A stretch of DNA of 64,000 bases from Diadema antillarum (Eukaryota), in contig NW_027272988.1 in the NCBI RefSeq assembly GCF_040938485.1, positions 1 through 64,000 on the forward strand, written 5' to 3'. Made by a program: the position numbers and the translations under genes. This document shows, piece after piece, positions 4,002 through 57,185 of this stretch; the first letter of the stretch is position 1; each line of letters opens with the position of its first letter. The notes below the pieces were generated by a model that searched no databases, was not told where the DNA came from, and saw nothing but the letters and a program-made list of their open reading frames with translations.

Positions 4002-7000
4002 TTAAAAACCAACACGCCTGTATACGAATAACCATTTTCTGCTCATGCGCAAAGTGGAACTCCGGACTGGCTTATTCATTATCTCGGGTCGTGTGAGATA
4101 GTAATCGTCTCTCACATTCTCACCTGTACTATTGCTGTATACCTCCATGTCTTCACTGGCACACAGCTCACATACCCATTTACCTGTAGCAAAGAAAAAA
4201 AAAAGAAAAAAGAAAGAAGAAGAAGAAGAAGCAGTATAAGAGTTTAATTCCCAGAATACTGTTACACCCAAACATACACAGCCATATTGACATCTGACGA
4301 CAATAAGACTTAGTGAGAGTGAGAGTGAGAGAAGGATCAGGGGCAGATGGAGGGAGAGAGAGGGAGAAATAGAGATGGGGGGGGGGGGAGGGAGAAAGAA
4401 CAAAAATGAAACCTGACAGGAGAGCAGATGACAGACAGACAGATAGACAGACATTTATCCTGAACCACAGTTCTTGGGGTGAAGTACGTGTCAAGTTGAC
4501 AACGATAACACCGAAAAGGCATAAAAATCACGCGACATGTATATCTAGACCTAATGTACATGCGAGAAGTCTTAATTGACAGTTCTCTTGTGCACGTGCT
4601 GTATTGGAAACCGTATAAATTTACAACTTCTTAAACCGTGCTCTGTGCTCTCAATTCATGATATAATATGATTATAAGAGAACATGGTAAATGCTTGGCA
4701 AATCTGCTTTCGTCCCCGGGTTTTGTCTCACAGGGCGTTTGGCACTATCTTACAGCAGTAACGTGCATTATCATAATCACATCTAAATGCTCTCTTTTAT
4801 ACATTGGAGAACGCCAACGTGTTTGCAAAGTTAAGTACAAAAATCAACACGCCATTTTTTCCCCCACACATTCGGCAGTTGATGTGCACATGAAAGCACT
4901 CAAAACATTGAGCATTTGGATGTTCGAACTTGCAAGAAACGTCAGGATTTACTAGTATGTTTCGTTGCTGTTGCGATTACATGGTTGTTTCATCGTAAAT
5001 TTCGGGCAGCAGCGAAGTTTGTTTATCATTCATACCATGCTAATCATTGTTAGATTAACTAGAAAGCGATCGCCCACGAACTTGCATCTGGTCCTTACGT
5101 CGTGAAGAGCTGCTGTGTGGACTGTGAGTGTGTCCCACTCACGTTTAGCACTAATGATTAACGATAGAAATCCATCTTTTCAGGGGCTTACAGTAAGTCA
5201 TGTGGTGAGGGCCTTGGAGAATGTATTATACATTGATAATGGCATACAATGTGAGAGATTATATTTGGCAGAACACCTCCTCGGCAAACACACATACTTT
5301 TTTTGTGTTCCCCATAATACAGGTGGCTGAAATGTAATTTGTATTATTTTTAATCCTATAAAAAATAGGTTTTTCAGTCGTATTACAACATGGAACATGT
5401 CATTAAAATAATGCAACAATCTACTGCATCTCATCTAATTCGTTTGGAAAATTAAGTTTTTCCTCAGAAAATCCAATTTTACAAAAATCACTGTTATTGT
5501 TCTCTTTTTACTCGTACTTTGTATTAAAACAAAAACAAAAACAAACAAAGTTGCAGAAAGAACTTGAAATTGAAAATGAAATTTATTTTTTTTTTCGCAG
5601 TGCCACTCACCGAAGAAATATGAAACCACAAAACAAATAAATATGAAATAAAATAAACGGCAAAACGGCAGCGGGATTTCCCCGTTGGCGCAACAGATAC
5701 ACAATCATTGCCACACACGCAATCAAGAATGTAAAAGTAGACACAACAACTGCATGCATCCTCATTGACTTCGTGCTTGGGCTTCCTTACCGCTGGGTTT
5801 CTCTTCGACGGTGGGATTGTGGCATGCCATGTGGTAGCCCTTGTCACACGAGTCGCAGAATAAAAGCGTGTCCTGAAGAAGAATTTGAATATCGATGATT
5901 ATCAAGACTGAAGTCGTAGAAAGTATACATCTACATAAGATTTAGAATTTGTACGTTAGATAGATAGTGTTAAACGACATGTCAATGTCTGTTTGTTGGG
6001 GGGGGGGGGGGGGTTTCTCGCCGTTTATATTTCATATGAATCGCGCATTTCTGCTTTGAATAAACAGTGATATCTCACTTGGTACATAACAAGAAATGTT
6101 TTTGAAGTTATGATGAAAAATCACATATTTTCTTATCACTTTCTTTGTCTTTTAGCCATTTTAATCGCAAACATCTCAAATTAACAAGAATGGAAATAAC
6201 TCATAATAAATAGTAAATTTGAATTTTTGAAGACTTGCGTGAATATCATTGGCACACTAAATGCGAAGCTGCCTCACATCATCTACTTTCTGCTATTGTA
6301 ATCAGGTGGTAACGACCAAGATTCTTATTTCATTAAACACCTGAAAATCAAAAATATACATATTATGTATAGTAATACAGCCTAGCCAGGATAATTGATT
6401 CGATTGTGTGTACGTGTGCGTTTTTTAATGAAAATTGAAGGAAACTGACTGCAACTATAGGTCGTACTATCCGTTTATATCTTTAATGTCAGTGTAGAAA
6501 AAAAGACTAAATAATATTTATAATCATGTTAATGTCTGCCTAGATGTAGAGTACATTGTATATATGCTTGCAATTATATCATGTCTATAGCAAAATTGAT
6601 ATTCACTCTTTTTTTTTTTCGACAAAGCACAAAATACATTTCACATGCACTAATTGGTGACAGAGATATTGACAGGGTAACAGAGAACAAACCATTAATC
6701 TCTGATATCTTATCAAGTCTGCGCAGTAACAGAATATCTTAAGTGTTTGCATGTTTAACTACTATAATATACTTATGTATTACGGGACCAACTGGCGCTT
6801 CTCTTTAAACAAAAGCACTTTGGCGGCTGGATTAACGAATACACAACATTGACTCACCGCATCGCCGGCGTCTTCGCATACGTGACACGTCTTGCAATCG
6901 ATACACTGCCAGGGCGATAGCCGCGATCGCTCAGCAAGCTGCTTGGAGTATTTCATGCAAGATGGATGAACTGAAAGGGTGAGGAAACGAATCGAATGAC

Positions 7001-7615: not shown

Positions 7616-7655
<40 letters not shown>

Positions 7656-7708: not shown

Positions 7709-7746
<38 letters not shown>

Positions 7747-7840: not shown

Positions 7841-10800
7841 TATATCTTATATATCCTATGAATGCATATATCGTATATGTGTAAATACAATGCTTGATGA
7901 CTGATGAAGCTATGTGAATTCACAGATATTCTTCACTTCGTTAATTGCCTTCGACACGGAGACACACAGACAGAACGACCTAATTTAATATAGACACACC
8001 TCACTAGCTTACGCTTTCCTCGAAATGTAGATGTAGATGTTATTAGGAAAATAAGGGAGACGTGCCTTTTTGAAAAGATAGGAAAAATAGTGGCTGATAT
8101 GAAGTGCAAAAAGTTTGCCATATAAACCTTGACCGTTTCCAGAACTGACGTTGACATTTCTTTCCTCCTACTACTATGTACTATGGGGGAAACTCGGTGA
8201 AAAAGCGAAAAAAGATAATAAGAAATAAACAAATACAAATGAATGAAATATTGAAATAATTGCGATAACAAGTAACAGTGCCCCTGTTTTCCTATTATGA
8301 CAATACGGCTTGTTCAAATTCCCTACTCTCGTATCGATGTTCCGTCTTTCCTTTTGTTTTCTGATAAAACATCGTATTGAAATAATGAACAAAATATTTC
8401 CATCAATGGACCTTTTTATCAGTGACGGATCGAGGGAGGGGGGGCGCTTCGGGCTCGCGCACCCCCTTTAATTTTGTTTTCCTTTAAAAAAGAATAAATA
8501 AACAGGAACAAAGGGGATGGTGCGTGCCCCCTTTAATATTTTGTTCCTTTATATACAATGTATATAAGTATGCATGAAATCGCAATACAATGTATATAAG
8601 TATGCATGAAATCGCACGATGACCAATATAAATATTGCTAAAAAAATAATAGAATCTCCCTACCGTGGGAAGGACACCTCCCTTGTCACCCGATTGTGTC
8701 AGAAAGTTGCCTCAGCTGATTAAACCCGGAAGTGGTACCAGAAACATAATTATACTTCCTTGCGCCCCCCCCCCCTTACGGAATTCCTGGATCCGCCCTA
8801 TTAGTTTTTCATTTGTCTGTTTGTTTTTGTAACTGAGATGTGCATATACAGACCTTTCAGAGTGCAATCTTTGCAGACAAGCAGTTCTTCCTTGTTGCCG
8901 AACTTATTACAGCTGGCGGGCAGGGTGCAGTAGTCGCATTTTTGGTCCCAAACGGATATTTTCACCACTGGTTCCTGCTCGAAATCGGGACCGTGCGTCT
9001 TCTTGATTCGCTGTAAGACATGAAAAAGAGGAAGAGAAACGTGTATAGAATTAACCATTATTCGTTCGACTTGTGAGAGAGAGAGTCACAACCTAACGCA
9101 CGTAAAAGATCCCACTCCATTCATTCATTCATTCATTCATCCCATCGAGCAGTGTGCATTATACCCCGTGAAGTGTTGCTGTAAACGTCGGTATTTTCGC
9201 GTGATTAATTTTTCGCGCTGAGCGGCTCAAAAACATTATTATTCGCGGGTTGTTGAATTCGCGCTGAGCAATAGTGAACTCATTCAAAATGAGTAGAGAA
9301 AATTGTGAATATATTCTCGGAGTTTTTAGATTTCGTACTAGCCAGTAGTAGCGCGAATTACACGAAAATTAATGTAACGCGAAAATTTCCAAGTTTACAG
9401 CAACAACTGGGCCCCATGGAAGACCAGCTAGTGCAGCTGGACACATTATGGGATATCCAGCCATCTTATAAGATGGAAAGTGAAAATAAAGAAACAAAAA
9501 CAAAAGCAAACTTGCTATATATAGGGCATGGTGTATGATTAAAGAGAATTAAATCGCACAATGAATCTCATGATAAGAGGAGGATGGGAGTAAAAAAAAA
9601 GGCAGCTGTAATGACATTCGTTGTATCTCTCAAAAAAAATGTGTCACGTCATCCATCACTTATTGGAATGACAGCAACCTTGGAATGCTGAAATACTACT
9701 ACATAATTTCTGTCAGAATTATCATCGCATGCGGTGGACTATGTTACGTTACCAAATAATTCAGTCTAGCTCTTTATTCTCCACATAATATTATTTTCAA
9801 AACTGCATAACTTGCGGCAAAAAGATGCAGAAACAAATGAACCAAAAGAAACAACAAGGAAACTTATTAGCACGGAGATAAAAAATGATTATCAGACATA
9901 TACTCCTACGAGTATTTTCATAGAAATTTGCGACCTACCTTCAGTATTCAGTTGATTTTGTTTTGAATTTGTGGGATCATTTTTTATTTTGCAAGAGTTG
10001 TTTCTTGAAATCCGTATAGCATATGGCTTTTAATGTCGAAAGGAAAATGCGGCAAAAATGCGAGCAAGCACGTGCACGTGACAGGAAGATGACACCTTTC
10101 CGCTTACATTATATTCATTTTGATTTCATTCGTTCTCATAAAGGAAAATGATGTAGCGGCGAGCTAGTGATTAAGACAGAATGGGGTGCGTGCAATCTCA
10201 TCTCATTGTGATGGAAGGAGAATTCATTCGGAATACCTTATATAGCGCCTCCTCTCCACCTTCCAAGAAATAAACGATTGCATCAATTAAAACGCACAAT
10301 ACAACGTTAACCCCACGCGCACACACGCATAATGATTAGGCCTACAGCAATTAAGCGAGCCATGTGCACCGTTACGCCCGGGCATGTGTATTATTGATAC
10401 ACAGCAGTCAGATTTTTTTTTTAAAGGACAAGTTCACCTTCATAAACATAAGGATTGAGAGAATGCAACAATATCAGTAGAACACATCAGTGAAAGTTTG
10501 AGGAAAATTGGACAATCGATGCAAAAGTTATGAATTTTTAAAATTTTTGTGTTGGAACCGCTGGATGAGGAGACTACTACAGCTTGTGAGTCATATGCGT
10601 ACAACAGTGTAAAGAAAATGTAAAAGAAAATTCAACATATTTTCACTTTTTTCGCATAATAAAAGAGCTCTTGACTTGCCTCTTTCTAAAGGCAGGGGGA
10701 ATAATATTACCCATAACATTTGTCGGTAACGAGTCAGGGGAATGTGTACTTTTTTCAAAAGATGGCATTTTGTGAAATTCTCTTTATATTTTCCTTATAT

Positions 10801-26407: not shown

Positions 26408-28482
26408 TGCTTGCTTGCTTGCTTGTTTAGCTGATGAAACCCGGAAGTGCCCCCCACCCACTTTGAAAATGTGGCGCCGGCCATGAGACAGGCACACATA
26501 CGCATAAACAGTATGTACTATACTATACTNNNNNNNNNNNNNNNNNNNNNNNNNNNNNNNNNNNNNNNNNNNNNNNNNNNNNNNNNNNNNNNNNNNNNNN
26601 NNNNNNNNNNNNNNNNNNNNNNNNNNNNNNNNNNNNNNNNNNNNNNNNNNNNNNNNNNNNNNNNNNNNNNNNNNNNNNNNNNNNNNNNNNNNNNNNNNAA
26701 AATAAGAACATTATAGGCCTGATGATATATGTCAATGTTATGTATTATACAATGTATATATTATATATGAATGTGCATGATCTAGCCAACACACCCAAGA
26801 GATTCATCGAAATAAGCGTAGCTGTACTCTTGCAACTTGACGCGCATGTTAAATGTGCCTCTATCTTATTGAATAGGCCTATATGCCCCACGTACATCGC
26901 TTTCACGGCGCTCGATCTGCAAAAGGCGATAGGTGCAGACGATAGAGATAGGTGATAATAATTATGTTTGACAATTTAACGCGCCGACTGAAGTTCTTGT
27001 CACTTTCGAAATTATGTCGCGAGGAAATGTGACGCAGGCGCACTTGTGTGTGAGCAGAAACCCAAACAAACGAAGAGAATGGTCAAGCATACCCAGAAGT
27101 ATAGTTAAGCGTGCGATAAGTCTTGCGGCCTGATTTCTGAATGTTGACAGTCTTGCGATGTTCGCCAGCATGCATAGCACGCACGGTTCTGATGCTGTCA
27201 TAAGAACGACTGAAGTTCATGTCGCCACGTGAAGTAGTAGGTCACGGCGCGAACTATAGTTCCCACCAGCACTGCTATTACTATGCGATCGACTATCAGA
27301 GCCACATAAGTTAATAACGTAGGCCTACCGATCACTGCGGACGAATCATGGCTCTGACATCAATACTGTTGACCTATCGCCCTTTAGTGAATCGGAAAAC
27401 TCACATGCCCCCCACCCCCCCCCCCCCCCCGTCACTCCATGTCATTATTACAGTAATCAAAATTACTATTACACTGTGTTATAATCTATCAAACGCGTAC
27501 GTTATCAATCCCTCGATCCGTCACCTCCATATAAGCACAATTTTTAATGTATGTCACTTCCGAGCTGTGGAGAATACTAGTAACCTTCGTCCGCGCTATT
27601 TGCCCCGGTGATTACACACGCAAAGGCAAGAGCGTGACGTAATGCGGGTCGTTCAACTATTGAATTGCATTTTTAAAGTTCATTATTGTCGCAGATAGAT
27701 GTTACGTGAGTTTATTATGATTGATCAATCTGCATCGGCATCCCTGGATGGCTTGTATAGTTCATTATGACCCAGCTCGCGCGCATTTGTGATATCAGTT
27801 TACAAAATGAAAAAAAAAAAACAGAACAAAACAAAGCAAAACAAAACAAAACGAAAAACACACAAACACCACGAACCTTCCGTTTCAAGGGCGGTCGCCC
27901 TCGCTTCACTTTCTGCGTGTTCTCGTTTTCATGGCTGTATACAATTTTTGCAAGGACATATCGACCCTCTTTGGCCGTGAAAATCCGTCCTGCACCAATT
28001 TCTCTCTTGATAGCCTCCTGCAGATAGCTTTGAGTGAATTTTGTGTCGGGGTCCTCATCAACGAAAAACTTCTCGATCTCCTCCAAAGTCGCTCCACCCT
28101 CTTCAGGCGCGCGGTCAGCTTTGCGAGGTTGAGGAAGACTTTGGGCCTGTCCCGAGCGAGTGGACTGATCGTCTTTGGCCGTTAGTTTCTCGATCGCAGC
28201 AAGAATAGCTCGCGTGGCATCGCTGGAATTGAGCTGAGATCCACTTAGGCGACTTCTGCACCATTTGGCGGCATTTCTGTAGCTGGTGTTACCTTTGTAA
28301 TCGACTTTGATGACGGTTTCCGCGTCCACCATTTGATTCAACTCCCGAATCACGTCCATGCTGCGAATGCCATTTTTACGCTCCACCATGTGACAAATTC
28401 GCTCCAAGTCGGGTCGAGCTTTGCGCTTTCGCAAAGAGTCAATGGCATCGAGAATCACAGCTTGGCTATTAACTGCAGCCAT
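4002..28482 (-). CDS. Inverted SAMD1/KAT6-N-terminus-like paralog: WH1 - WH2 - AT-hook - double PHD finger; exons 28482-27877, 9010-8854, 6970-6858, 5872-5791, 4183-4124 (or read-through to stop at 4002, 379 aa); no SAM seen
   Basis: Five GT-AG exons of 606, 157, 113, 82 and 60 nt, the same lengths and phases as the + gene, with open frames and all Cys/His ligands intact. The 3' end is uncertain. Confidence 0.85.
4124..4183 (-). CDS. Paralog exon 5 ([20 protein letters not shown]); may extend to stop at 4002
   Basis: ctacag| and |gtgaga, 60 nt. The frame stays open for about 40 more codons past the donor. Confidence 0.88.
5791..5872 (-). CDS. Paralog exon 4 ([27 protein letters not shown])
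   Basis: cttcag| and |gtaagg, 82 nt. Confidence 0.93.
6858..6970 (-). CDS. Paralog exon 3 ([38 protein letters not shown])
   Basis: ctttcag| and |gtgagt, 113 nt. Confidence 0.93.
7561..7838. repeat. (TA)n-centred palindrome with about 58-bp arms plus a third arm copy
   Basis: ggttgacga...aatgcatgca (TA)n tgcatgcatt...tcgtcaacc (TA)n, then the right arm again and (TA)n. Confidence 0.9.
8420..8800. mobile_element. hAT-like MITE (CAGTG[A/G]CGGATC...GGATCCGCCC family); related pieces at about 3270-3405 and 54886 onward
   Basis: Imperfect TIRs; the shared end ttacgg[a/g]attcctggatccgccc occurs at 3378-3402 and 8776-8798. Confidence 0.6.
8854..9010 (-). CDS. Paralog exon 2 ([52 protein letters not shown])
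   Basis: ttacag| and |gtctgt, 157 nt. Confidence 0.92.
9177..9402. mobile_element. Short MITE rich in TTTTCGCG/CGCGAAAA
   Basis: tgctgtaaac...ttttcgcg / cgcgaaaattt...gtttacagca. Confidence 0.65.
10421..10997. mobile_element. MITE with long TIRs (TTAAAGGACAAGTTCACCTTCAT...)
   Basis: Near-perfect inverted repeat over the first about 45 bp, imperfect beyond. Confidence 0.85.
11706..12149. mobile_element. Second, more decayed copy of the same MITE family
   Basis: ttaaaggtcaagttcaccttcat ... ctagtcctttaa; internal similarity to 10421-10997. Confidence 0.75.
12162..12392. mobile_element. Short MITE
   Basis: gacccaaattcacgaaggtggtttaaattta / taaatttaaaccaccttcatgaattcaggtc. Confidence 0.75.
19120..20086. 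mobile_element. Harbinger-like non-autonomous element, copy 1
   Basis: TIR gtgtcacacctttccgggcaag / cttgcccggaaaggtgtgacac, with a second internal left end near 19290. Confidence 0.75.
21343..22309. mobile_element. Harbinger-like non-autonomous element, copy 2 (made by the tandem duplication)
   Basis: Same TIRs at +2223. Confidence 0.75.
23799..24366. mobile_element. CACTCT...AGAGTG MITE nested in the piggyBac-like element
   Basis: After removing the inner MITE, cactct(t)aaatcatccgagtcagaactgacccggaa pairs with ttccgggtgagttctgaaccggatctttttagagtg. Confidence 0.7.
23804..24168. mobile_element. TTAAAGGGGATGGC MITE, innermost nested element
   Basis: Long near-perfect TIRs; a second copy lies at 45372-45804. 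Confidence 0.85.
26530..26698. other. Assembly gap (169 N) in intron 1 of the - paralog
   Basis: Run of N. Confidence 1.
27877..28482 (-). CDS. Paralog exon 1: WH1, WH2, AT-hook
   Basis: ATG at 28482 to AAG|GTTCGT, 202 codons; near-identical to + exon 1 over most of its length. Confidence 0.93.
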
Positions 28483-28625
28483 ATCAAATATTAGAATGTT
28501 TCAGAACTTGCCTGAAAGGACGTAAATTTGGGCGAAAATGATTATGCGTCTCTGTTTTTTTCTCTGAAAGCGCTTGTGTTCGGCCTAAGATCAGAACACG
28601 CACAGCACATGAAGCTGTTGCCTTT

Positions 28626-28753
28626 ACACACGCGTCCGCTCGTCATTGAATATATTACTCAAGCGGCGGCATGCGTGTAGTCAAACTGTAGTTGTATCGC
28701 AACGCTAAACATACACCAAAGTAGATCGAAGATTATTAGTGCGCATGCGTTGT
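28626..28753 (-). promoter_or_regulatory. Proximal promoter/5' region of - paralog, homologous to 34396-34547
   Basis: Shares ACAACGCATGCGCA, CTACTTTG, TTTAGCGT, GCCGCCGCT, TTCAATGACGAGC and CGCGTGTGT in the same order. Confidence 0.6.
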
Positions 28754-32553: not shown

Positions 32554-32855
32554 CAGAGACTCCAACTCTCCCGTTTTCGACGGGAGATCTCCCGCCGAAA
32601 ACCCATTTTTGCAAAATCTCCCGTTCTCCCGTTTGAGATTTAATTTCTCCCGCCCTGGCTCAATGTCTCCAGTTGGAAAGGATTTCTTACTTATTGCTAT
32701 CATATGTTGCAAAAATAAGCCTTAGATAGCACCAGAGAGCATCTATAACCCAAGGAACTTCACGCTTCGCACACATAAACTTGGGTCTCCCGTTTGCTGG
32801 GGGTTTCAGGCGGGAGAATCTCCAGATCAGAAGGTGCTTGGGGTTGGAGTCTCTG
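32554..32855. mobile_element. hAT-like MITE with 6-bp target duplication CAGAAG
   Basis: cagaag|cagagactccaac ... gttggagtctctg|cagaag. Confidence 0.75.
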
Positions 32856-32973
32856 CAGAAGTGATTGTAACAAAAGACAATTAGGCCTACTACGTACCTT
32901 TCAGCTGTAGTTTATAGGAGTACAATAGCCTATGTAGTCTCAAAATGTGAGTTATTCTCGAAACAGAACCTCG

Positions 32974-33004
<31 letters not shown>

Positions 33005-34395: not shown

Positions 34396-34547
34396 ACAAC
34401 GCATGCGCATTATTAATCTTCAAGCTACTTTGATGTATTTAGCGTGGAGGAGCGATCATGCAGTTTACAACACACGTACGCCGCCGCGTCGCGCCGCCGC
34501 TACAATAGTAATTTATTCAATTCAATGACGAGCTAGCCCGCGTGTGT
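34396..34547 (+). promoter_or_regulatory. Proximal promoter/5' region of + gene with NRF1-like GCATGCGCA and CRE-like TGACG
   Basis: CpG-rich; motif blocks are colinear with those upstream of the - paralog. Confidence 0.6.
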
Positions 34548-34699
34548 GTACTGAACCTTTAGCTAACATTATGGAACGCAACGACTATTACTATTAGGCG
34601 GCTTCGCGTGTTTACTTCATCTACAGAAAACAAGTATATAACTCAAGATTGACTTTTTGTCAACCTTAACTGTTGTTCTACTGGATTCTGATCGAAGAT

Positions 34700-35305
34700 A
34701 TGGCTGCGGTTGATCTTCAAGCTGTGATTCTCGATGCCATTGACTCTTTGCGAAAGCGCAAAGCTCGACCCGACTTGGAGCGAATTTGTCACATGGTGGA
34801 GCGTAAAAATGGCATTCGCAGCATGGATGTGATTCGGGAGTTGAATCAAATGGTGGACGCGGAAACCGTCATCAAAGTCGATTACAAAGGTAACACCAGC
34901 TACAGAAATGCCGCCAAATGGTGCAGAAGTCGCCTTAGTGGATCTCAGCTGAATTCTAGCGATGCCACGCGAGCTATTCTTGCTGCGATCGAGAAACTAA
35001 CGGCAAAAGACGAGTCTACTCGCTCGGGACAGGCCCAAAGTCTTCCTCAGCCTCGCAAAGCTGACCGCGCGCCTGAAGAGGGTGGAGCGACTTTGGAGGA
35101 GATCGAGAAGTTTTTCGTTGATGAGGACCCCGACACAAAATTCACCCACAGCTATCTGCAGGAGGCCATCAAACGAGAAGTCGGTGTAGGAAGTCTTCTT
35201 ATGTCTCAGAATGGCAATTACTTGCTGGCCAAATTGTCATCAAGAGATAAAATCGAGAACCACGTCCCAAAATCGAAACGAGGTCGCCCACCCTTGAAAC
35301 GAAAG
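34700..35305 (+). CDS. SAMD1: Exon 1: SAMD1-type winged helix WH1, KAT6-like WH2/H15 domain, AT-hook (KRGRPP)
   Basis: 606 nt = 202 codons from ATG to AAG|GTTGGT. The same donor position occurs in the - strand paralog. [11 protein letters not shown]...[15 protein letters not shown] resembles KAT6A WH2. Confidence 0.93.
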
Positions 35306-47300: not shown

Positions 47301-50108
47301 AGACTTGTTTATATGTTTTAGTGTTTTAGATCAATGTCAATAAGCGTTCTACATGACCCTCTTTTTGTGAAAAGAAAAACGAGAAATAATTGATGGCGTC
47401 TATTATCGGGTGTATATGAACTCCGTGTGCCACTTTATAGACTGTTTATGCGTTTTAATGCTGCGCGTACATTCAATGTTTATCAATTTTGAAATATCTT
47501 GTCCACAGAATCAACTTTTGTACTGTGCAAGGGAGTTTTTGCTTCAGAATGGAAGCGCTGTACAGGACAGAGAGTAGCAGCCGTGCTCCTACAACTCCGA
47601 CGACGACGGAGGCGAAACAATGGAAATATGATCTCGACATTCTATGAATAAACGATGGAATATAGTATATTTGCTCTACTCTCCTATAGCGAAGGATTCT
47701 TTTTACACGTTATGTCCATACATTCTCTCTTTTCTTTTCTTTTCTTTTTTTCTTGGGGGGGGGGGTCAAATTTTTCACTAATCAATGCATTTGGTTAATT
47801 ACTTATTCATGTGTTCCACATTGTTTTTGCGGAGCAGAAGCGAGGCATCGGCGTCATATTTCGTCGTCGTTGTTGTCGTCGGCGTCATCGGCGCTGTCAA
47901 CAAAGTAGTGTGCTCTCTCTAACTTTCCACAGCTTTGACCTATGACCACCAAACTCACACCACAGCTACATAACCTAAAAATGCCGGTCATTTTCGCACA
48001 TAGGTGAAGTTGGACAAGTTCAAAGGTCAAAAGGTCAATGAATTTGCCCTGATATGCAATCTACTCACAGGTTTGTCGTGTACTCCCAATGACTTTCCAT
48101 AGATTTAAGGCATGACTACCAAACTCACACCACAGGTGCCGGTATAGATGCCAACCAGGTGTGAATATGGGTGAAGTCCAACATGGTCAAAGTTCAAAAC
48201 GACAATGAACTTTCCTTGATAAGCTATATTCACAGCATCGTGGTATTTATGTACTCTCAATAACTTCCACAGATTTGAGCTATGGCCACCGAACTCACAC
48301 CAAATTAAGATGTCGGTCAAGGCCGAATATGAGTAGATTCGATGAGTAAGTTCAAAGGTCAAATGGTCAATGGTCGGTGAACTTTAAATGGTCAGCAATA
48401 TACACATAGTGCTGTGGTCTTTTCTCAATAACTTTCCACAGCCAGAGGTAGGACTGCATAACCTAAAGATGCCGGTCTGATCAAGTTCGAATATGGGTGC
48501 ATTCCAACAAAACTAAGTTCAAAGGTCAAAATAAACAATGAACTTTACCGGATAAGCACTTTACACATAGTGTGGTGTACTTTCAATAACTTTCCACATC
48601 TTTGAGCTATGACCACCTAATTCATACCACAGGTAGGCCTACATCATCTATAGAATATCAGTGAATTCCGATAAAAGGTCAAAAGGTCACTGAACTTATA
48701 AGGACTCTACTCACAGTATTGTGGTGTACTCTCAATTTCCACATCGTTGAGCTATAACGAATGAAAAATTCACACTACAGGTACATCACCGAAAGATCAT
48801 GTTGGTCGTAAGTACGAATATTGGTGAATGATTGTCAATGATAACAAGGTCAAAGGTCAAATTGTCACTGAACTTTCCCTGATAAGCACCATCCTTTGTT
48901 GTGTGCTCATACATGGTCAGGCTCAAATATTGGTGAAGTCGGACAAGGTCAAATGTAGAAAGGTCAATGAGCTTTCATTGAAAAACACTATAGAAATGCG
49001 ATATGCAGGCGAGACATCACTTGGCGTTTGCCTTGTTAGCCAAGTTGTACAGTGAAAAGCGGATTGTGTGAAGAATCTTGGAGATATATAAAATTGTGTT
49101 TCTATAAAGGAGTAGTAAAGCAAGTGTGATGCCGTAGTTATGCAATCGTCGTAAGAGACACCGCTCAAGAAATAAAGGTCGACAGTCCTTACTTCAAACG
49201 TTACGTGATTTCCCTCAATACCTCAAGGATAGGCCTAAGTTGAATTCATTCAGCCTCTTTGAAAATAACTTCTTTGGAAGCGTGTGTATAGGTTGGATTC
49301 CTCCAGACAAAAACATTTTCCTCTCACTTCACTGTAATTCACAAAAACCATACACTTTTTCAGTGTATGAGACGATTATACTTATTGCTTATAGAGACAA
49401 AAAGTAAGTTGACAGGATCTCACCCAGGGGCCACGGAACGTTTTTCAATGTGTGGCGGTTGTGGGCGGGATGAGAACAGGGGCAAGGCTCAATGGTGCCC
49501 CCAACACACACACACCTTTTCGGTTGGGGACGGAACCTTTGGAAAGTGTGGATATTATGTTTTTTTCCGCTATTATTTTACCGAACCCCCCCCCCCCCCA
49601 AAAAAAAAAAAAAAGAATGGGGGGGGGGGGGAGGGGCGTTGAGGGCTCAACCTTCTTCACGTATAAATCGTTACCAAACAAAAACATTCTTTTCGTGTAC
49701 GCCCGGCCTGTTTTCTGTCAATCTATATCTATATATCTATTGATCTATTTATACATTTATCTGTCTATGTTTCTCTGCATTATGATATTATCATACAGCG
49801 TCTCAAAAAGACACACGGACCCGACTTCGAGCAGGAACCGCTGGTGAAAACGCCGCCGTCTGATCTAAACTGCGATTACTGCTCACTTCCCTCAAGCTGT
49901 AACAAGTCAGGAAAGAGAGAAGAACTGCTCGTCTGCAAAGATTGCGGTCTGAAAGGTGGGTGTCTTCCCTATATAGAGATTCGTTGAACAATTCAGTCAC
50001 TATTATTTATTTGTCTGCTTGGCTTCTGTTTTCCATTCCTCGGTGTGCGCTTGGTAAGACAGAAGCGCCGACATGGTAGCGGTGCATTCAGTTCAATTCC
50101 ATTTTATA

Positions 50109-50574: not shown

Positions 50575-53500
50575 CAAAGATGAACCACAATTGTGACCTT
50601 ATAGTTTTCATTTACTTTCAGAATTGGACATGGTTATTGTTTATTTACGTGCTTTGGTGTTAGCGAGAATGTTTTTGCATTAGAACTATACTGGTATTTG
50701 TATTAGCTTATCATCAACCATGTGAGTAGATGGTAACATGCAATATAGGGCCTACTCGTATGTTGCATGGTTGATATGAATAACACCAGAAACTGAGATC
50801 AAAGTATGCGCTAGCAAATTAAATAGGAATGATAGTATGTCATACTTCGAAAGCATGATACGAGTACGAATGTCATAACATCAGAAGTTTGTGTGTATAG
50901 GCTCGTGGTAGGTGAGGAATCATTATCGTGCGAGTTTTTCCTACATGCACTATGTACAATATCGGTTCCTTCGTAAAAGTGAATACACGTGGTAGACGTC
51001 GCTTTCCATAATGATAGCTACTGATAAAGCTTCCGGCAAGAATAGATGACTTAAATTTTAGACCATGTAGGCCTATGAAACCAATTTAACATTAAACAAA
51101 TATGAATTGACAAATCGGGGTTCTTGGAGAAAGATCAATTTCATGTTGGTATGGGCCCAATTTGCAAAAATGTAATGTACTTCACAAGAGTTGCAGTTTC
51201 CAATACATGTATTTACAGTTACAAACTTGTCATTAGGCGACGACCAATCAGCCAACATCATTGATATTTGTCGCCGATGATTAATGCACCCCCTTCAATA
51301 TCTACACACGTCTTTAACAAATCAGCTCCAGTTTTTCTTTTTTATAAAAATTTCCAATTTGTAATCGCAGCTTGAAGATGGACATGGCAGCTGAAGATAT
51401 AGTGTAAATCAGTGTCTCGGTACAAGATCACAGTGAATGAAGAAATTGAAAATGACACAGCAAGGCTTTCTGAAGTTTATTTCAATTTAATATTATCATA
51501 AAAACACCATGATGAAGTCATGACCTGGAAGTTAATTGAGTTCGATATGCCGCGCCTGTGTGTATTTGTATATCAATTAATGAGGATGATTAATTAAATC
51601 TCACGTAATTTTCTCTGATATTAATGTTTTAATTACCTTTCAGTTCATCCGTCGTGCATGAAGTATTCCAAGGAACTTGCCGAGCGATCACGACTATCGC
51701 CGTGGCAGTGTATCGATTGCAAGACGTGTCACGTGTGTAAAGAAGCAGGAGACGCAGTAAGAATGCAAACTCAAATTTCCATTAAATTGATACATTAATT
51801 AAATGTACAATGTCTCTTTGAATATCTAATTCTATGATGTTGCTTCCGGAATTGAAAGTGACTGTATGTAAGTATAGTAACATAAATGTTCCCTTCACAG
51901 TCTTTGATAGTTTACTTAGTTTAGTTTTACGTAGGATTATATTTCCATGAAAATATTTGTCTTAAGCATTTATGCTCTTTAGGATATGCAAAAGGATCCA
52001 ACAATATCAAAACATTTTAAAACTCCCCACAATATTCGAAAATAAGCCAAAATACGTGGCAATGCCACTATCATTAAAGTTTGAATGGCTTTCGTGAGCA
52101 GTGGTCTCATGGAATGATTTCTATAAGACTTTGTCCATGACCAAGAAAAATGGTTTCTGGTGTGTATCCATGGAAATGTGATCTGATTTTCATAACTTGC
52201 AGGAGGTGTTCGAAAAAATAGAGATGGCACGCCGGACCGCGTCATTGTTGATTTTCCAATGATATCGGAATATTCGTACCAGTGAGGTACCTTGTTCGTA
52301 TGTATCATGAAGGTGTTTACCGCCATTAATTTCACTATGGGAAAAACATCTCTCTTTATACAACAGTTGAATAATGAAGAGTTTCCCCTCAATGATGCCA
52401 TACAGCATGTGTCTTTAGCTTCCTAAAGGGTATAGATTTATCAATAATGTGAAAATAGAATATATCACATCATTACCACGTGAGGTTTTGGGGCAAACAC
52501 AGAGAAAAAAGGATATACTTACAGATCTATCTTCCCATGTGAATATAGTGGATTGATAGTGACTTAAGGATTACGGTTCGATATTCGAGGTTCGAACGCC
52601 TGAAAATTAAGTAATGTTCGTTGACTTGGGTCACAGGTCGTTTCTCGAGGTCGATAGCCTTGAAAACGAAGTAAGATTCGTTATTCCGAAGGTTTGTTCG
52701 TCCGAAAAAGAAGTTAGTTTTGTTAATCTGAACCCTACTTCACTTTCGGACTATCGAAACTTAACTAACCTTATTTCATTTTTGGATTAGCAAACCTTCA
52801 GAATGACGAGCCTGGGATTTCATTTTCGGACTAACAAATCTTCGAAATGACGCCATAAATGTTCGAATTATTGAACCCCATTTCATTTTCGGACTAACGA
52901 AGATCTTGGTATATAGGCTTACGGAAATTGTGAGATTCGGAATAACGCACCTTTGGCCTTGGGAATAACGAATATCACCCCTGACTTGAACCAAGGAGGT
53001 ACTAGGCGAGCTCACCTATACAGTACCTCCTTGCTTGAACCAGCCTTTCACGTAGAACTTAAGAGATTTGTGGTTACAACTTCTACAATGTATATCATAC
53101 TTCTTGTTTGCATGTGTACTTTTCAAGGATACTCTACTTTTCTGTGATTCCTGCGACAAGGGATACCACATGGCGTGCCATACTCCGACTGTTGAAGAGA
53201 AACCGCACGGTAAGAGAATCCAATCTATTCTTGCTTTGGATTGAACAGGAAAACTGCGGCAGACAGTCCGCGTGTAGTATACTGCCATGACAATATTCAT
53301 GAAGGCAGAAGCGGGTGGCTTGATATAATGACCTCGAAGAATTATCGAATCACAGTAATTCAGAATTTGGCCGATCATGTTTTTAGTAATTAGGGAATCG
53401 CATAGTCGTACACAAATATACGTTTTTGTACGAGTTGAGATTACGCAGTTTAATTACAACAGTCAGTGACTAATGAGAATACTGAAGAGATCGAGCTATA

Positions 53501-54567
53501 CTGTGTGTAGATTCGTATAGTTTCTATACTATGGATAACGCGCCCGGCTAAGGTGAGTGGAGCATATAACTGTAATATCACGACTCGACATGCTTTATAA
53601 GCCGTTAATTGCAACTATTAGGCCTATTCAGTGAGAAGTTACAAAACTGTAGGCCTCCATGGCATGGCATCTTATGTGGTGAATTCGTAGGAACCCGTGA
53701 GCGTTCATCCTTCGGACTTTTGTCACTTGTAGTTTGTAATCTTGGCCGTGATGGCAGCTCTGGCTGTATGACAAAATGACTACTAGTAATATATCAGCCA
53801 CGGAAGTTATTTACGCAACGATGGGTAAATGTCTCGTTTTCATCGTTTGCAGGGACTTGGGTGTGTGAGCCTTGCGCCAGCGAAGACATGGAGGTCAAAA
53901 GTACAAGTACAGGTGAGAAAACTGCCAAAGGAATTCTTGAACCATGAGCATGCTAGCATGACAAATTTCTCTCGTCTGTATCTAAGCGCACGTTGTAGTG
54001 CGCTTCTTCTTTGGTCTGTATGTTTATGTTGTGTATAATTTGCGTGAGCGAGTAATTTAGTTACGGCCTCTCCTCGTAGTGTTTTCCCCTGGGATTATTT
54101 GTGTGACATGGGCGTGATATTCTGGAGGAGCAATTAACAGATCCTCTATTCATTTTGTGATCAAATGGAAGCGATAACATTAGATGAAATCCTGTTGTAT
54201 GCAGTATTACTCTCGAAGAAGTTATAATCAAATAAATGAACCTTTACGAATAATGTGCTGTCTACAGCATCATGGTTATTGTGATCAGTTTTCATTTTAA
54301 GAACTGGAAGTTAGAAATAAGCTGAATTAATTAGTACGAAATACTGGTAATTTCTCTGATCTCAGTTTTCAATGAAATTGCATTGATTTCATTAGCTCAT
54401 TTCAGATAAATATATCTGTACGGATTCTTTATTCATTCAGTTCGACCTATGCACGCCATTTTGCAAAGTTTGTTCCAAATTTCTTATTCATGGGACCCTA
54501 AACTCTTTCGTGTTGATCATTCGATTTATGTATCGGTAGACTTAGTTAGACTTAAGTGTGTGTGTTA

Positions 54568-54598
<31 letters not shown>

Positions 54599-57185
54599 TT
54601 CTTTTATGGTTGTACTCCATTGTTCAACCAGCCACGATGAAGTATCGATATAAAATTAATTCAACTCGACTCGATTCTCGTGTTTTTAATTGCAAACGTG
54701 GAAGTAGGCTATGTGTTCCATATACTGTAGACCTTCGTGGAAATTGATTGAATTGTTGTGATTTATTGACTGAAAATAGCAGCCCAGAGGCTGAAATACA
54801 TTCAATTTACAATAAAAGCTTAAAATTTACAATGCTTCACAATTAACTACATGAATTTATACATACGTCCGTCTAAACCAACTAGCAGTGGCGGATCCAG
54901 AGGGGGGGGGGGGGGGGGGGGGGGGGCAACCGGCGCACGCCCCCCCCCCCTTTATTTTCCGTTAAAAACTCCAATCATCTCTCTATCATTTCTATTGCCA
55001 GTTTAAGGAACAGTATAATTTTTAGCGATTTAGAGGCTTTGGTTATCCTGCCAGTGAAATGAACAATGGTTTACAATGTACCCCAAAAATAGGGCTCAAA
55101 TGAAACAGCAGGTTTTTATTCTACCTTGGGAAAAACTGACAAGAAAAGATAAAAATCTACAATGATAATAATAATAAAAAAACATACATCGAACCATAGA
55201 AATGCGGTTCTATGACTTGATGGCATAAAGTATCGGTTACAGCTCGTTATTCCGAAGGTTCGTTATTCCGAAGGCTCTTCAGTCCGAAGATTCGTTATTC
55301 CGAAGGTTCGTTATTCCGAATTTCATTTTCGGATCAACAAATCTTCGGAATAACGAACCTTCGGAATAACGCCACAAATGTTCGGATTAAAGAACCTTTT
55401 TTTCATTTTCGGATTAACAAACCACTAGGTATAGGGAATTTGTGTGTTTCGGAATAACGAACTTTCGGAATAACGAACAGCACCCAAAGTATCGTGCCCT
55501 TATTTCTCATTTATGCTGCATCATGTTACAGATGGAGATGGCTCACTCGTCTCATCAGCATCGAGCACCGACGGCTCGCCTAGCTACAAACCGACCAAGG
55601 AGCACGGGGAAGACGCACTACTACAAAACAAGTAAGATGACCCGTCGAGGTTTGTTGTCTGAACACGCCGAGGGCTTGGAATTCTGTCAATGCGCGCAAA
55701 AGTCAAACAGATTTGAGTCGAGTTGCAGGGCCTCTTATTGATTTCGTCAATAAAACGTGCAATCCAATCGTGTGATTTACACTCATTATAAGTGACCTCA
55801 TCACTTTCGTACGATAGCCGTATTTACTTTTGCCTAGAATTGTTTTACAAATATAATGTTTGAGAGCTAAAGAGGGTGTAATATTTATTTCAAAAATGTG
55901 ACTGAACAGTACGGAGTGACGTCAGTTATTTCATGATGAACCTATCATGAACAGAATTCTCAGAGCATACCCTGATCAGCGAAGGTGTATTTTGAGCCTC
56001 GATATGAACTACACACTTCATTAATATCGTGATTTGATATCAACTCACTGCACCATTTACTATATCAAGATATAATTTGTCTCTCCCGTTGTTATGCAAC
56101 AGACCCAATTCAACATCGGGTCAGGTATCTCCAGACGTGGCTACACCGAACCTGTCGATGCCAGCCAACCTCCCCGAGCAGTCGGCCCAGAGCCGAACTA
56201 GCAGTCCGACCAAAGACAGCCTCTCCACACACCCGTCCACATGGTCTCTGGAGGATGTTGTCAGTTACTTCAAGCAGAGGGGTTATGTAGAGCAGGCGGC
56301 TTCATTTAAAGATCAGGTATAGAACTTTGGGATGTGGCTGGAGCATTCTTAATCATTCATTATCCGTATAGTGGTTAAGTAACATTGCAGTGCGTCGCCA
56401 GTTTGACAAACACTTGCATGACTTGTGAGTGTTTCTCAATTTTGTATGGCCAACGTCGACAAGTTGCCTTAATTAACATGAAAGTGACAACCGAAAGTGC
56501 AGCGTTGAGCATTAAGGTATTGATAGTTTCGCTGATTAAGTTTGAACCACCTCTCCAAAGTGATTATATAGAAATGTGAATAAGTTTTATAACACTTTCA
56601 GAAAAAGTTCTTTTGACATTTCATCCTTTGTAATACACCTGTCTTACAGAGACCAACGTTGTTGAGTTTTCTTATTCCCAGTGAAAGTGATATTTAAAAA
56701 CGCTTGTGTATGGAAGTACCAGTGTTATAATAATTCTTCCCGTGATTTATTGCCAGTGTTCTTTATCACAATCACTCTTCCAAGCGTTTTGATTAAGGTG
56801 TAATAAAAAAGAAGGATGCCCTAATGGTGTTTAAAAAAAAAAAAACAAACAAAAAAAAAACCCTCTTTGGGCAGTTTGCGATAACGTCATGAACCGAGTC
56901 CTGATGTGTTTAATCTTTCAGGAAATTGATGGCAATGCACTCCTGCTTCTCCGAAGATCCGATGTGCTGACAGGACTATCATTCAAGCTAGGCCCCGCCC
57001 TCAAGATATACAAACAGGTCAGCGAGTTGCAACTTCATTACGCAAAGAAGTCTGCCTTCGACACGCCCACCACGCCGTCGCCCTCGCTCAACTCTGTGGA
57101 AACGACGTCCAGTAAAAAGCGGCGCACTGATTTCAGCAACTCTGTAACCATGGCTCCTGGTCACACTGAGCTCCTCGCCAACTGA
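34700..57185 (+). CDS. SAMD1: SAMD1/atherin-like chromatin reader, 8 coding exons (34700-35305, 49799-49955, 51644-51756, 53128-53209, 53853-53912, 55532-55631, 56103-56316, 56922-57185), 531 aa: WH1 - WH2(H15-like) - AT-hook - double PHD finger - SAM
   Basis: All introns are GT-AG and phases chain correctly (0,1,0,1,1,2,0) to 1596 nt ending in TGA. WH1 [21 protein letters not shown]...[11 protein letters not shown] and [13 protein letters not shown]...[30 protein letters not shown] closely match recalled vertebrate SAMD1 motifs. Confidence 0.9.
39707..40800 (-). mobile_element. Decayed PIF/Harbinger-type element with a pseudogenised MADF/Myb-like DNA-binding ORF (about 40020-40518)
   Basis: Left end ttaa|agcccccgttcac. 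The - strand translates to acidic/basic [19 protein letters not shown]... then [40 protein letters not shown], broken by stops and frameshifts. Confidence 0.6.
41750..43878 (+). mobile_element. Helentron/HINE-like repeat split by the TIR element; a related 3' end lies at about 15290-15355
   Basis: tgacctttgac motifs, gacagacggtcggacgg microsatellite-like stretch, and a ccggcaccct(t)caggg...cata(t)aaa terminus shared with 15330-15355. Confidence 0.5.
42265..43612. mobile_element. 1.35-kb TIR element with seven AGTAACGCGTGGGAC motifs
   Basis: tatatgg(a)caagtccaagctatt / aatagcttggacttgcccatata; inserted in a tgacctttga-type repeat. Confidence 0.75.
44310..45277. mobile_element. Foldback-like element built from TTCGTTATTCCGAAGG / TTCGGAATAACGAA units; related copies at about 15540-15650, 52565-52978 and 55240-55480
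   Basis: Left arm carries the motif forward and right arm reverse-complemented, around an unrelated spacer. Confidence 0.65.
45372..45804. mobile_element. TTAAAGGGGATGGC MITE, second copy
   Basis: Same TIRs as 23804-24168. Confidence 0.85.
47823..48990 (+). repeat. Helentron/HINE-like element with an internal array of at least six 150-170-bp units
   Basis: The actttccac...tatgaccaccaaactcacaccacag...aagttcaaaggtcaaa unit recurs near 47921, 48091, 48261, 48431, 48588 and 48735; head tttttgcggagcagaagcgaggc plus (gtc)n. Confidence 0.7.
49799..49955 (+). CDS. SAMD1: Exon 2: first half of PHD1 ([52 protein letters not shown])
   Basis: catacag| acceptor, |gtgggt donor, 157 nt. Not in the ORF track in this frame; found by translation and by match to paralog exon 8854-9010. 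Confidence 0.92.
50110..50154. repeat. (TA)n microsatellite; others: (CT)n about 13090-13120, (CA)n about 50525-50570, (GT)n about 54570-54594
   Basis: Read directly. Confidence 0.95.
51644..51756 (+). CDS. SAMD1: Exon 3: PHD1/PHD2 junction ([38 protein letters not shown])
   Basis: ctttcag| and |gtaaga, 113 nt. HPSC...WQCIDCKTC is the KAT6/DPF double-PHD signature. Confidence 0.93.
53128..53209 (+). CDS. SAMD1: Exon 4: PHD2 ([27 protein letters not shown])
   Basis: tttcaag| and |gtaaga, 82 nt, [10 protein letters not shown] motif. Confidence 0.93.
53853..53912 (+). CDS. SAMD1: Exon 5: end of PHD2 ([20 protein letters not shown])
   Basis: tttgcag| and |gtgaga, 60 nt, WxCxxC. Confidence 0.9.
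55532..55631 (+). CDS. SAMD1: Exon 6: Ser-rich linker ([34 protein letters not shown])
   Basis: gttacag| and |gtaaga, 100 nt. Supplies the phase 1 to phase 2 switch needed between exons 5 and 7; no domain signature. Confidence 0.75.
56103..56316 (+). CDS. SAMD1: Exon 7: linker and first half of SAM domain
   Basis: caacag| and |gtatag; [29 protein letters not shown]. Confidence 0.9.
56922..57185 (+). CDS. SAMD1: Exon 8: second half of SAM domain, C-terminal tail, stop
   Basis: ctttcag|GAAATTGAT; [37 protein letters not shown]; TGA ends at 57185. Confidence 0.92.

Follow-up and report, generated by a model that had tools for sequence, protein, structure and literature searches.

SAMD1 (atherin) is a CpG-island-binding repressor of vertebrates, and structures are available for its winged helix (WH; 6LUI) and its SAM domain (6LUJ and 6LUK). 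The locus considered here lies within the first 64,000 nucleotides of contig NW_027272988.1 of Diadema antillarum (assembly GCF_040938485.1); this whole stretch is referred to below as the window. It holds two genes in head-to-head orientation whose proteins share with SAMD1 an N-terminal SAMD1-type WH and a C-terminal SAM domain closest to that of SAMD1. However, the region that separates WH from SAM is disordered in vertebrate SAMD1, while in the Diadema proteins it contains a further WH-like domain followed by a double PHD finger (DPF); in addition, R56 of SAMD1 is replaced by His.

The N-terminal order of WH1, a putative WH2, and DPF would be shared with KAT6A/KAT6B (MOZ/MORF) and Drosophila Enok, the structural match of the second WH-like domain being weak. 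The Diadema DPF is closest to that of KAT6A, and the RefSeq name of the proteins is derived from KAT6. Unlike KAT6A/KAT6B, the Diadema proteins have no MYST domain, comprise 531–584 aa instead of about 2,000, and end in a SAM domain, while their WH1 resembles SAMD1 much more closely than KAT6A. D. antillarum appears to have its KAT6-type gene elsewhere, on contig C1305. A tandem PHD (DPF) is also shared with the BAF45 subunits DPF1–3 and PHF10 (5e-27 to DPF3 and DPF2), but Pfam did not find Requiem, C2H2, or SAY domains in the Diadema proteins, which have WH and SAM instead. At the DNA level, the locus resembles inverted paralogue pairs subject to patch-wise gene conversion, in that a sharply bounded tract of low dS is embedded in otherwise old inverted copies. 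It differs from them in that the tract covers the DNA-binding domain of two paired chromatin readers and in that the exchange seems to have ended around the split of D. antillarum and D. setosum.

The reading we prefer, with a probability of roughly 0.88, is that of a divergent paralogue pair derived from an old inverted duplication, both members being intact chromatin readers that are also paired in D. setosum, evolve under purifying selection, and have undergone conversion in exon 1. The gene pair is real but ordinary: a conserved chromatin-reader gene, already annotated, with a lineage-specific inverted duplicate and a textbook gene-conversion patch. The features of the window are as follows (the copies are named after their strands).

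4124..4183, minus strand: minus exon 5, 60 nt, end of PHD2; the final exon of the minus copy within the window
5791..5872, minus strand: minus exon 4, 82 nt, PHD2
6858..6970, minus strand: minus exon 3, 113 nt, last part of PHD1 and first part of PHD2
8854..9010, minus strand: minus exon 2, 157 nt, beginning of the first PHD finger; agrees with RefSeq models P0249 and P0248
23803-24173 and 45366-45805, no strand assigned: palindromic MITE-like element shared by the first introns (blastn of the window halves)
26530..26698, no strand assigned: assembly gap (N) in intron 1 of the minus copy; flanks colinear on C50
27877..28482, minus strand: minus exon 1, 606 nt, ATG at 28482; SAMD1-type WH, second WH-like domain, and AT-hook-like motif (Pfam PF21524, 4.6e-28; AF2 model against 6LUI)
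28007..28464, minus strand: minus arm of the gene-conversion tract, CDS nt 19-476, codons 7-159 (97.2% identity, low dS)
28483..34699, no strand assigned: spacer of 6,217 bp separating the start codons; D. setosum and the other haplotype have it in colinear, non-inverted form
28702..28753, minus strand: upstream block of 52 bp conserved between the paralogues, about 220-270 bp 5′ of the minus ATG, containing CGCATGCGCA
34396..34445, plus strand: partner of this block in the plus copy, likewise conserved between the paralogues
34700..35305, plus strand: plus exon 1, 606 nt (Pfam PF21524, 2.4e-28; 100% match to RefSeq XP_071482446.1 = P0156)
34718..35172, plus strand: plus arm of the gene-conversion tract, on the same evidence as the minus arm
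49799..49955, plus strand: plus exon 2, 157 nt (RefSeq exon match)
51644..51756, plus strand: plus exon 3, 113 nt (RefSeq exon match)
53128..53209, plus strand: plus exon 4, 82 nt (RefSeq exon match)
53853..53912, plus strand: plus exon 5, 60 nt (RefSeq exon match)
55532..55631, plus strand: plus exon 6, 100 nt, Ser-rich linker (phase logic, then RefSeq model)
56103..56316, plus strand: plus exon 7, 214 nt, linker and N-terminal half of SAM (RefSeq exon match)
56922..57185, plus strand: plus exon 8, 264 nt with the stop codon counted, C-terminal half of SAM and a short copy-specific tail (RefSeq exon match)

A preliminary description of this DNA had proposed that exons 1–5 of the two genes agree in length and phase, and this is correct to the base (606/157/113/82/60 nt with start phases 0/0/1/0/1, every internal border being of the AG..GT type). 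The count given there for exon 3, 17 of 38 codons differing through 14 synonymous and 3 replacement changes (Q/E, E/K, and D/E), was reproduced exactly. The first introns, of 18,866 bp in the minus copy (169 N included) and 14,493 bp in the plus copy, had been said to lack homology beyond dispersed repeats; indeed, when one half of the window was compared with the other by blastn, they shared just the MITE-like element and microsatellites, and the non-repeat matches were the exons and the 52-bp block upstream of each ATG. For exon 6, tblastx and tblastn searches by paralogue similarity or with distant homologues gave noise only; its position was deduced from the exon phases and subsequently settled with the RefSeq models. 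Its minus-copy counterpart is 82 nt long and barely alignable.

The suggestion that the pair could escape automatic annotation proved unfounded, as both genes are already RefSeq models. The plus copy is XP_071482446.1 (531 aa, 8 exons, an exact match exon by exon), and the minus copy is represented in the window by the partial XP_071482447.1 and on C50, the allelic contig, by the 584-aa XP_071483171.1. Whole-protein searches used these RefSeq entries of the database itself. In the protein collection, the records for both copies are RefSeq models, with no transcript-derived fragment among them, and a word search of the same collection using the C-terminal half of the minus protein, which is specific to this copy, retrieved the partial RefSeq model on contig C124 only and no Logan transcript.

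Both proteins (531 and 584 aa) have the same domain order, namely a SAMD1-type WH, the second WH-like domain, the DPF, and a SAMD1-type SAM, and Pfam detects SAMD1_WH, PHD, and SAM in them. The first domain scores 97.6 and 98.5 bits with PF21524 against a curated cut-off of 24.5, and its AF2 model superimposes on the SAMD1 WH (6LUI) with a TM score of 0.91, an rmsd of 0.7 Å, and 55% identity. A PDB sequence search likewise places 6LUI closest (9e-17), with KAT6A at 5e-7. The SAMD1 residues that contact CpG DNA are R43, R45, K46, R48, R56, Y87, K88, and R94 (PMC8115922), and seven of the eight are kept in both copies, the exception being the phosphate contact R56, which is His in each. The second domain is predicted to fold as helix-helix-helix-hairpin (pLDDT about 86–93). 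Its structural matches, to tandem-WH proteins and histone H1x, are weak (E 0.002–0.03, H1x standing at rank 24 with E 0.03), and Pfam detects no domain here in the Diadema proteins, Linker_histone matches being confined to relatives. The translations of both copies contain all 16 zinc ligands of the DPF, whose closest PDB sequence is KAT6A (3e-28). For the C-terminal domain, the best PDB match is the SAMD1 SAM 6LUK (5e-19); L3MBTL3 is at 4e-10, and the SAMD1 match stands nine orders of magnitude above L3MBTL3 or PHC3. The Pfam SAM_1 and SAM_2 matches are themselves weak, and the sole one above the cut-off is SAM_2 in the plus copy (22.9 bits).

Membership of the KAT6/MYST histone acetyltransferases was considered and rejected, since PF01853 (MOZ_SAS) is absent from the complete RefSeq proteins. 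A whole-genome scan for the MYST domain gave 24 matches, of which none lies on contigs C2100 or C50. The name “histone acetyltransferase KAT6A-like” that RefSeq gives to the products is therefore a misnomer, and a misleading one, as the proteins have no catalytic domain and are SAMD1-like instead.

Apart from one KAT6-type locus, no other gene with a SAMD1-like WH was found in the genome. Proteins combining WH, WH2, double PHD, and SAM occur from cnidarians to amphioxus, and some of the mollusc members carry the NCBI name “atherin”. Judging by best matches, this family is probably the invertebrate counterpart of SAMD1/atherin; no description of a WH-DPF-SAM invertebrate family was found in the parts consulted of the literature on SAMD1 and KAT6 winged helices. 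The family architecture hints at a relationship between SAMD1 and the KAT6 N-terminus and may be of interest to the field of CpG-island readers. A broader scenario, which we put forward tentatively and regard as rather doubtful, is that the pair are the only SAMD1 orthologues of Diadema, that SAMD1 ancestrally possessed a KAT6-like WH1-WH2-DPF module which was replaced in vertebrates by the disordered region, and that conversion limited to the DNA-binding part kept both paralogues on the same CpG targets while linkers and tails diverged. If so, the two proteins would be readers able to co-polymerise via SAM, with a shared address and different effectors.

The assembly amounts to roughly double the haploid size, 84% of the BUSCOs being duplicated, and the window is a haplotig of the 3.77-Mb contig C50. 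The pair illustrates that alleles from both haplotypes are retained side by side in the D. antillarum assembly, where they may be taken in error for duplicated genes. One might accordingly regard the inverted pair as an artefact, formed from two haplotypes or by a misjoin across the run of N that separates minus exon 1 from exons 2–5. This is refuted, with next to no probability left to it, by the presence of the pair in identical order and orientation on C50 and in the chromosome-level assembly of D. setosum. Moreover, the preliminary description had held that the copies are not haplotigs of each other, and they do differ at 61% of synonymous sites, as against about 1–2% of such sites between haplotypes (about 5% in introns). 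The flanks of the gap are colinear on C50 with 96–99% identity and 167 bp between them; hence both sides are continuous, and minus exon 1 is correctly linked to exons 2–5. The gap lies in intron 1, 1,178 bp beyond the donor of minus exon 1, and therefore interrupts no reading frame. After exon 5, the minus copy is cut off by the beginning of the contig; its exons 6–8 are found on contig C124, and the gene is complete on C50. An inversion of the 6.2-kb spacer via the inverted identical tracts was also considered and rejected, since neither the other haplotype nor D. setosum departs from colinearity there.

The ancient inverted duplication proposed earlier from the sequence is supported. Synonymous sites outside exon 1 are saturated: over exons 2–5 and 7, pooled pS between the paralogues is 0.61 (JC dS about 1.26) and pN is 0.083. 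Examination of relatives and synteny, which the preliminary description had recommended, showed that D. setosum has orthologues of both copies in the head-to-head arrangement; their starts are 7,961 bp apart on chromosome OZ188198.1. How old the duplication is relative to other echinoid lineages can be read in two ways. In the best trees, the two Diadema paralogues group together whether exon 1 is included (support 99/99) or not (81/83), and one cluster only was found per camarodont species, both of which favour a duplication later than the diadematoid/camarodont split. The other possibility is that the duplication predates this split, the minus copy being the true orthologue of the single S. 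purpuratus/Lytechinus gene and a plus-type copy having been lost in camarodonts. Camarodont exons 2–5 are in fact nearer to the minus copy (72/90/89/74% against 64/85/81/68% for the plus copy), the lower support for the Diadema clade once exon 1 is left out and the saturation of synonymous sites point the same way, and without exon 1 the AU test does not reject a grouping of the minus copy with camarodonts (p 0.165). This closeness, however, is explained by a faster plus copy, whose linker and C-terminal tail differ from those of the minus copy. In Tajima relative-rate tests, the plus copy accumulated 28 changes against 9 in the minus copy with S. purpuratus as the outgroup (p 0.002) and 35 against 9 with L. 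pictus (p 9e-5). We consider the older duplication unlikely, though its probability is not negligible, and retain the lineage-specific one.

Exon 1 departs sharply from this picture of age. In D. antillarum, the paralogues are 97.2% identical over the 458-bp tract as against 63% at CDS nt 477–606, and their dS rises from 0.12 in the tract to 1.24 just downstream; in D. setosum, the corresponding values are 0.03 and 2.4. The paralogues share an uninterrupted identical stretch of up to 110 nt (permutation p < 5e-5), and no tract site separates them in both species. The likeness of codons 7–159 is thus attributable to recent gene conversion rather than to age and selection, and the tract, which encodes the DNA-binding part, was homogenised by interlocus conversion until about the split of D. 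antillarum and D. setosum. Extreme nucleotide constraint, for example, from an overlapping regulatory or RNA element, might produce a similar pattern, the tract being 98–99% conserved between the species and encoding the most conserved domain. Such constraint is very improbable, however, given that the paralogue dS in the tract (0.03–0.12) equals the level between orthologues of the two species (0.06–0.07) despite the more than 10-fold greater age of the duplication, and that its borders are abrupt, as seen at codon 160, where dS leaps to 1.2–2.4. In addition, the exon 3 peptide is equally conserved (3 of 38 residues differ) while its synonymous sites are saturated, and Diadema and camarodont proteins are only about 60% identical in the tract. 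Conversion continuing after the species split was rejected, as no site has a species-specific shared pattern. The tract contains 3 synonymous differences between the paralogues in D. setosum and 11 in D. antillarum, a count too small to argue from.

Under the preferred reading, an old inverted duplication generated head-to-head paralogues, each encoding a chromatin reader of about 530–580 aa. The SAMD1-type WH is predicted to bind unmethylated CpG, the KAT6/DPF-type double PHD finger to read the histone H3 tail, and the C-terminal SAMD1-type SAM to oligomerise; CpG binding, H3 reading, and SAM polymerisation are all proposed from homology. Gene conversion between the inverted copies homogenised the DNA-binding part of exon 1 until approximately the species split. 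Presumably, both copies are expressed and act on the same CpG-rich DNA, where their divergent tails may recruit different partners.

Purifying selection on both copies, also claimed beforehand, is evident from the comparison of D. antillarum with D. setosum, in which the whole in-frame codons of each exon were counted and then added up, with split codons excluded. Each copy has a dN/dS of 0.18 (18 nonsynonymous and 29 synonymous changes in the minus copy, binomial p 1e-8; 23.5 and 35.5 in the plus copy, p 2e-9), and hence neither is near 1, the value that had been named as speaking against such selection. Exon 7 of the plus copy gives a dN/dS of 0.075 against the other paralogue. As had been maintained, neither gene is a pseudogene, frames and splice sites being intact in two haplotypes and two species. 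One could still imagine a single working copy, the other one (the plus copy, with its higher rate, or else the minus copy) being silent or in decay, with conversion helping to keep its frame intact; the branch of the plus copy is 8-fold longer, and conversion is able to rescue part of a gene. Yet the tract covers 458 of about 1,600–1,750 coding bases, the value of 0.18 includes the never-converted exons 2–8, and the splice sites and zinc ligands are all kept in both species and both haplotypes, which makes a single working copy improbable and favours two functional paralogues. Between the haplotypes of D. antillarum, the minus copy shows 0 nonsynonymous and 4 synonymous differences, and the plus copy 1 and 3, respectively.

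The head-to-head pair in the window is a real but ordinary case: a SAMD1-like gene for a chromatin reader, duplicated long ago in inverted orientation, with both copies under constraint. An inverted-repeat scan and blastn of the reverse-complemented left half of the window against its right half yielded five colinear matches, which are exons; the borders of exons 1-5 were set by pairwise alignment and splice-site reading. The copies are named by strand.

27877-28482, 8854-9010, 6858-6970, 5791-5872, 4124-4183, minus strand: minus copy, exons 1-5
34700-35305, 49799-49955, 51644-51756, 53128-53209, 53853-53912, plus strand: plus copy, exons 1-5
55532-55631, 56103-56316, 56922-57185, plus strand: plus copy, exons 6-8

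As the preliminary description had stated, exons 1-5 have identical lengths (606/157/113/82/60 nt) and equal phases in both copies, and AG..GT is present at all internal borders; its codon count for exon 3 was also reproduced, 17 of 38 codons differing, 14 synonymously and three by replacement. The plus copy consists of eight exons, and their exon-wise translation, with split codons checked, equals the 531-aa model exactly. On C50, a 3.77-Mb contig with the allelic locus, the minus copy likewise has eight exons (606/157/113/82/60/82/214/441 nt, 584 aa). The first introns (18,866 bp in the minus copy and 14,493 bp in the plus copy) have in common a MITE-like element and microsatellites only, so the statement that they lack homology beyond repeats holds. 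The element is palindromic (arms of 166 nt, 94% complementary) and colinear in the two genes (23803-24173 and 45366-45805), representing either two independent dispersed-repeat insertions or the sole surviving intronic homology. Intron 1 of the minus copy also bears a tandem duplication of about 2.2 kb at 19158-22308 (19158-19699 again at 21381-21922), each unit of which has internal inverted repeats.

Upstream of each start codon, about 220-270 bp before the ATG, lies a 52-bp block (28702-28753, minus strand; 34396-34445, plus strand) whose identity is 83-87% from paralogue to paralogue and 92-98% from species to species; the remaining upstream sequence is unalignable. The block includes CGCATGCGCA, which we take to resemble an NRF1/P3A2-type site, and may be a core promoter kept by both copies. 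At 30 bp ahead of the minus-copy ATG, TCCTTTCAG could serve as an acceptor.

Selection was assessed by Nei-Gojobori counts exon by exon, using complete in-frame codons only. Between the paralogues, exons 2-5 and 7 pooled give a dS of about 1.26 (pS 0.61, saturated) and a pN of 0.083, with dN/dS of about 0.03-0.16 per exon. Between D. antillarum and D. setosum, the minus copy has dS 0.077 and dN 0.014 (18 nonsynonymous and 29 synonymous changes; binomial test against neutrality, p 1e-8), and the plus copy dS 0.106 and dN 0.019 (23.5 and 35.5, p 2e-9 by the same test). dN/dS is thus 0.18 in each copy, far from the value near 1 that would have spoken against function, and the purifying selection proposed for both genes is confirmed. 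Haplotype differences amount to zero nonsynonymous and four synonymous in the minus copy, and one and three in the plus copy.

The proposed antiquity of the inverted duplication is borne out as well: the tree and the dS comparison together place the duplication before the D. antillarum/D. setosum split, which it predates about 14-fold in dS. In the maximum-likelihood tree of deuterostome family members, the Diadema paralogues group together as sister to S. purpuratus and L. pictus, with support of 99/99 for the full alignment and 81/83 when exon 1 is left out. An alternative topology, where the minus copy groups with the camarodonts, is not rejected by the AU test (p 0.165). A duplication after the diadematoid-camarodont split is therefore the most likely timing, but the matter is not settled. 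The plus copy evolves faster, with a branch of 0.40 vs 0.05 for the minus copy and Tajima counts, with echinoid outgroups, of 28 vs 9 (p 0.002) and 35 vs 9 (p 9e-5). Between the copies, exon 6 and the tail past the SAM domain practically cannot be aligned.

Exon 1 has a different history. CDS nt 19-476 (window 28007-28464 and 34718-35172; codons 7-159, which encode the first winged helix, WH1, and the greater part of the second domain) share 97.2% identity between the copies, against 63% for exon 1 nt 477-606. Within this tract, the D. antillarum paralogues have a dS of 0.12 and those of D. setosum one of 0.03, rising directly downstream to 1.24 and 2.4, respectively; ortholog dS in the tract is 0.06-0.07. 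In a site-pattern check on a six-sequence alignment, no tract site has the paralogues consistently different in both species and none has the species consistently different, every difference being private to one lineage or one allele. The low dS and the exclusively private differences show full homogenisation by gene conversion until about the D. antillarum/D. setosum split, followed by independent divergence. Nucleotide-level constraint as the cause of the identity is ruled out because paralogue and ortholog divergence are equal in the tract, although the duplication is more than 10 times as old as the species split. The gene-conversion patch covers the predicted DNA-binding part of both constrained copies. 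Inversion of the spacer through the inverted identical tracts has not happened.

Pfam recognizes in the encoded proteins SAMD1_WH (about 96 bits, cut-off 24.5), two PHD fingers, and one SAM domain, with no match to MOZ_SAS. Among PDB sequences, the winged helix is closest to SAMD1 (6LUI, 9e-17; KAT6A, 5e-7), the double PHD finger (DPF) to KAT6A (3e-28), then DPF3 and DPF2, and the SAM domain to SAMD1 (6LUK, 5e-19; L3MBTL3, 4e-10). In an AlphaFold2 model of exon 1 (mean pLDDT 80), WH1 precedes another domain, built as helix-helix-helix-hairpin; Foldseek ranks the SAMD1 winged helix first (TM 0.91, rmsd 0.7 Å), then KAT6A WH1 and ZMYND11, and only weak matches (tandem winged-helix proteins, histone H1x) could cover the second domain. 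Eight SAMD1 residues contact DNA (PMC8115922), and seven are kept here (R43, R45, K46, R48, Y87, K88, R94), R56 being replaced by His. All 16 zinc ligands of the PHD fingers are present in the translations of both copies. By analogy with SAMD1 and KAT6 (PMC8115922, PMC9881136, PMC9908889), the protein is most likely a reader with three predicted activities: WH1 would bind unmethylated CpG-rich DNA, the DPF would read the H3 tail, and the SAM domain would mediate oligomerisation.

A whole-genome scan for the MYST domain gave 24 exon matches, none on the window contig or C50. The sole other SAMD1-like winged-helix match in the genome has 33% identity (G000:C1305:30177-30566), and a strong MYST-domain match follows it 120 kb downstream on the same strand (149911-152612). 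This locus, with an allele on contig C1563, probably represents the real KAT6 gene (MOZ/MORF/Enok) of the species.

A profile-free search with exon 1 retrieved a protein family whose members measure about 450-630 aa, and a word search with one of them led to named echinoderm entries. The architecture (winged helix, second winged-helix-like domain, DPF, SAM; P0002-P0265) is widespread among invertebrates, occurring in cnidarians, molluscs, annelids, chelicerates, hemichordates, and amphioxus under various automatic names ('KAT6B-like', 'atherin', 'ubi-d4', 'PHF10'). Independent duplicates exist in several lineages, for example as adjacent genes in Sinanodonta and as two genes each in Lingula, Patella, and Gigantopelta. 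There is no vertebrate member among the best 120 matches, and the literature search found no published description of the architecture. Since both the winged helix and the SAM domain are closest to vertebrate SAMD1, sequence similarity suggests that SAMD1 may have lost a KAT6-like DPF module.

On the window, tblastn aligned one D. antillarum RefSeq protein to the plus copy, with 100% identity in most exons, and one D. setosum protein to the minus copy, with 96.5-100%. The cluster look-up returned six RefSeq models, four from D. antillarum and two from D. setosum, and whole-protein analyses were run on RefSeq entries.

RefSeq models of the two genes.
XP_071482446.1, 531 aa: plus copy, window's own 73,896-bp contig
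XP_071482447.1, 342 aa, partial: minus copy, window's own 73,896-bp contig
XP_071483170.1, 531 aa: plus copy, 3.77-Mb contig C50
XP_071483171.1, 584 aa: minus copy, C50
XP_072173104.1, 529 aa: plus type, D. setosum
XP_072172577.1, 583 aa: minus type, D. setosum

The concern that automatic annotation could miss the pair proved unfounded: RefSeq already has models of both, although the name given to them misleads. In D. setosum, a related echinoderm, the genes also stand head-to-head, their starts 7,961 bp apart on chromosome OZ188198.1. Exon 7 of the D. setosum plus-type gene (L011:35267-35480) is 214 nt in the genome, the same as in D. antillarum; the RefSeq protein, 2 aa shorter, mismatches its straight translation, and the model may use a different acceptor.

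In agreement with the preliminary description, the two genes are not haplotigs of one another. The window contig as a whole (the window being G000:C2100:1-64000) is a haplotype copy of C50 (G000:C50:2278000-2346000, about 2.278-2.346 Mb): the entire arrangement recurs there, with identities of about 95% in introns and 98-100% in exons. This situation agrees with an assembly size of 1.73-1.75 Gb in which 84% of BUSCOs are duplicated (preprint 10.64898/2026.05.24.727502); for comparison, the D. setosum genome has 886 Mb (PMC11066563). The preprint takes such redundancy for past segmental duplication; at this locus, it looks like two haplotypes instead.

The sole N run in the window (26530-26698) falls in minus-copy intron 1, at a distance of 1,178 bp from the donor of exon 1. 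It therefore interrupts no reading frame; continuity across it matters because it separates exon 1 from exons 2-5. The right flank (26699-27876) maps to C50:2309256-2310431 at 99% and the left (to 26527) to C50:2310599-2312084 at 96%; since they lie on one strand 167 bp apart, these coordinates show unbroken sequence across the gap, whose written length is about right. The gap is not the source of the difference in this intron between C50 (25.4 kb) and the window (18.9 kb).

In the window, the minus copy ends after exon 5, the contig starting inside intron 5, where about 770 bp separate it from exon 6. For this haplotype, exons 7 and 8 map to the 2.69-Mb contig C124 (G000:C124:2518085-2520500, fetched as L008), which lacks exons 1-5 and carries a second partial RefSeq model of 246 aa; exon 6 should lie just beyond the fetched stretch. 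Thus, the two partial models (342 and 246 aa) represent one gene, the truncation is a matter of assembly and not of biology, and the window contig probably fits into C124 at a point where that contig is broken or misjoined. About 300 bp at 32554-32850, in the intergenic spacer, are present in the window haplotype and missing from C50, an indel polymorphism.
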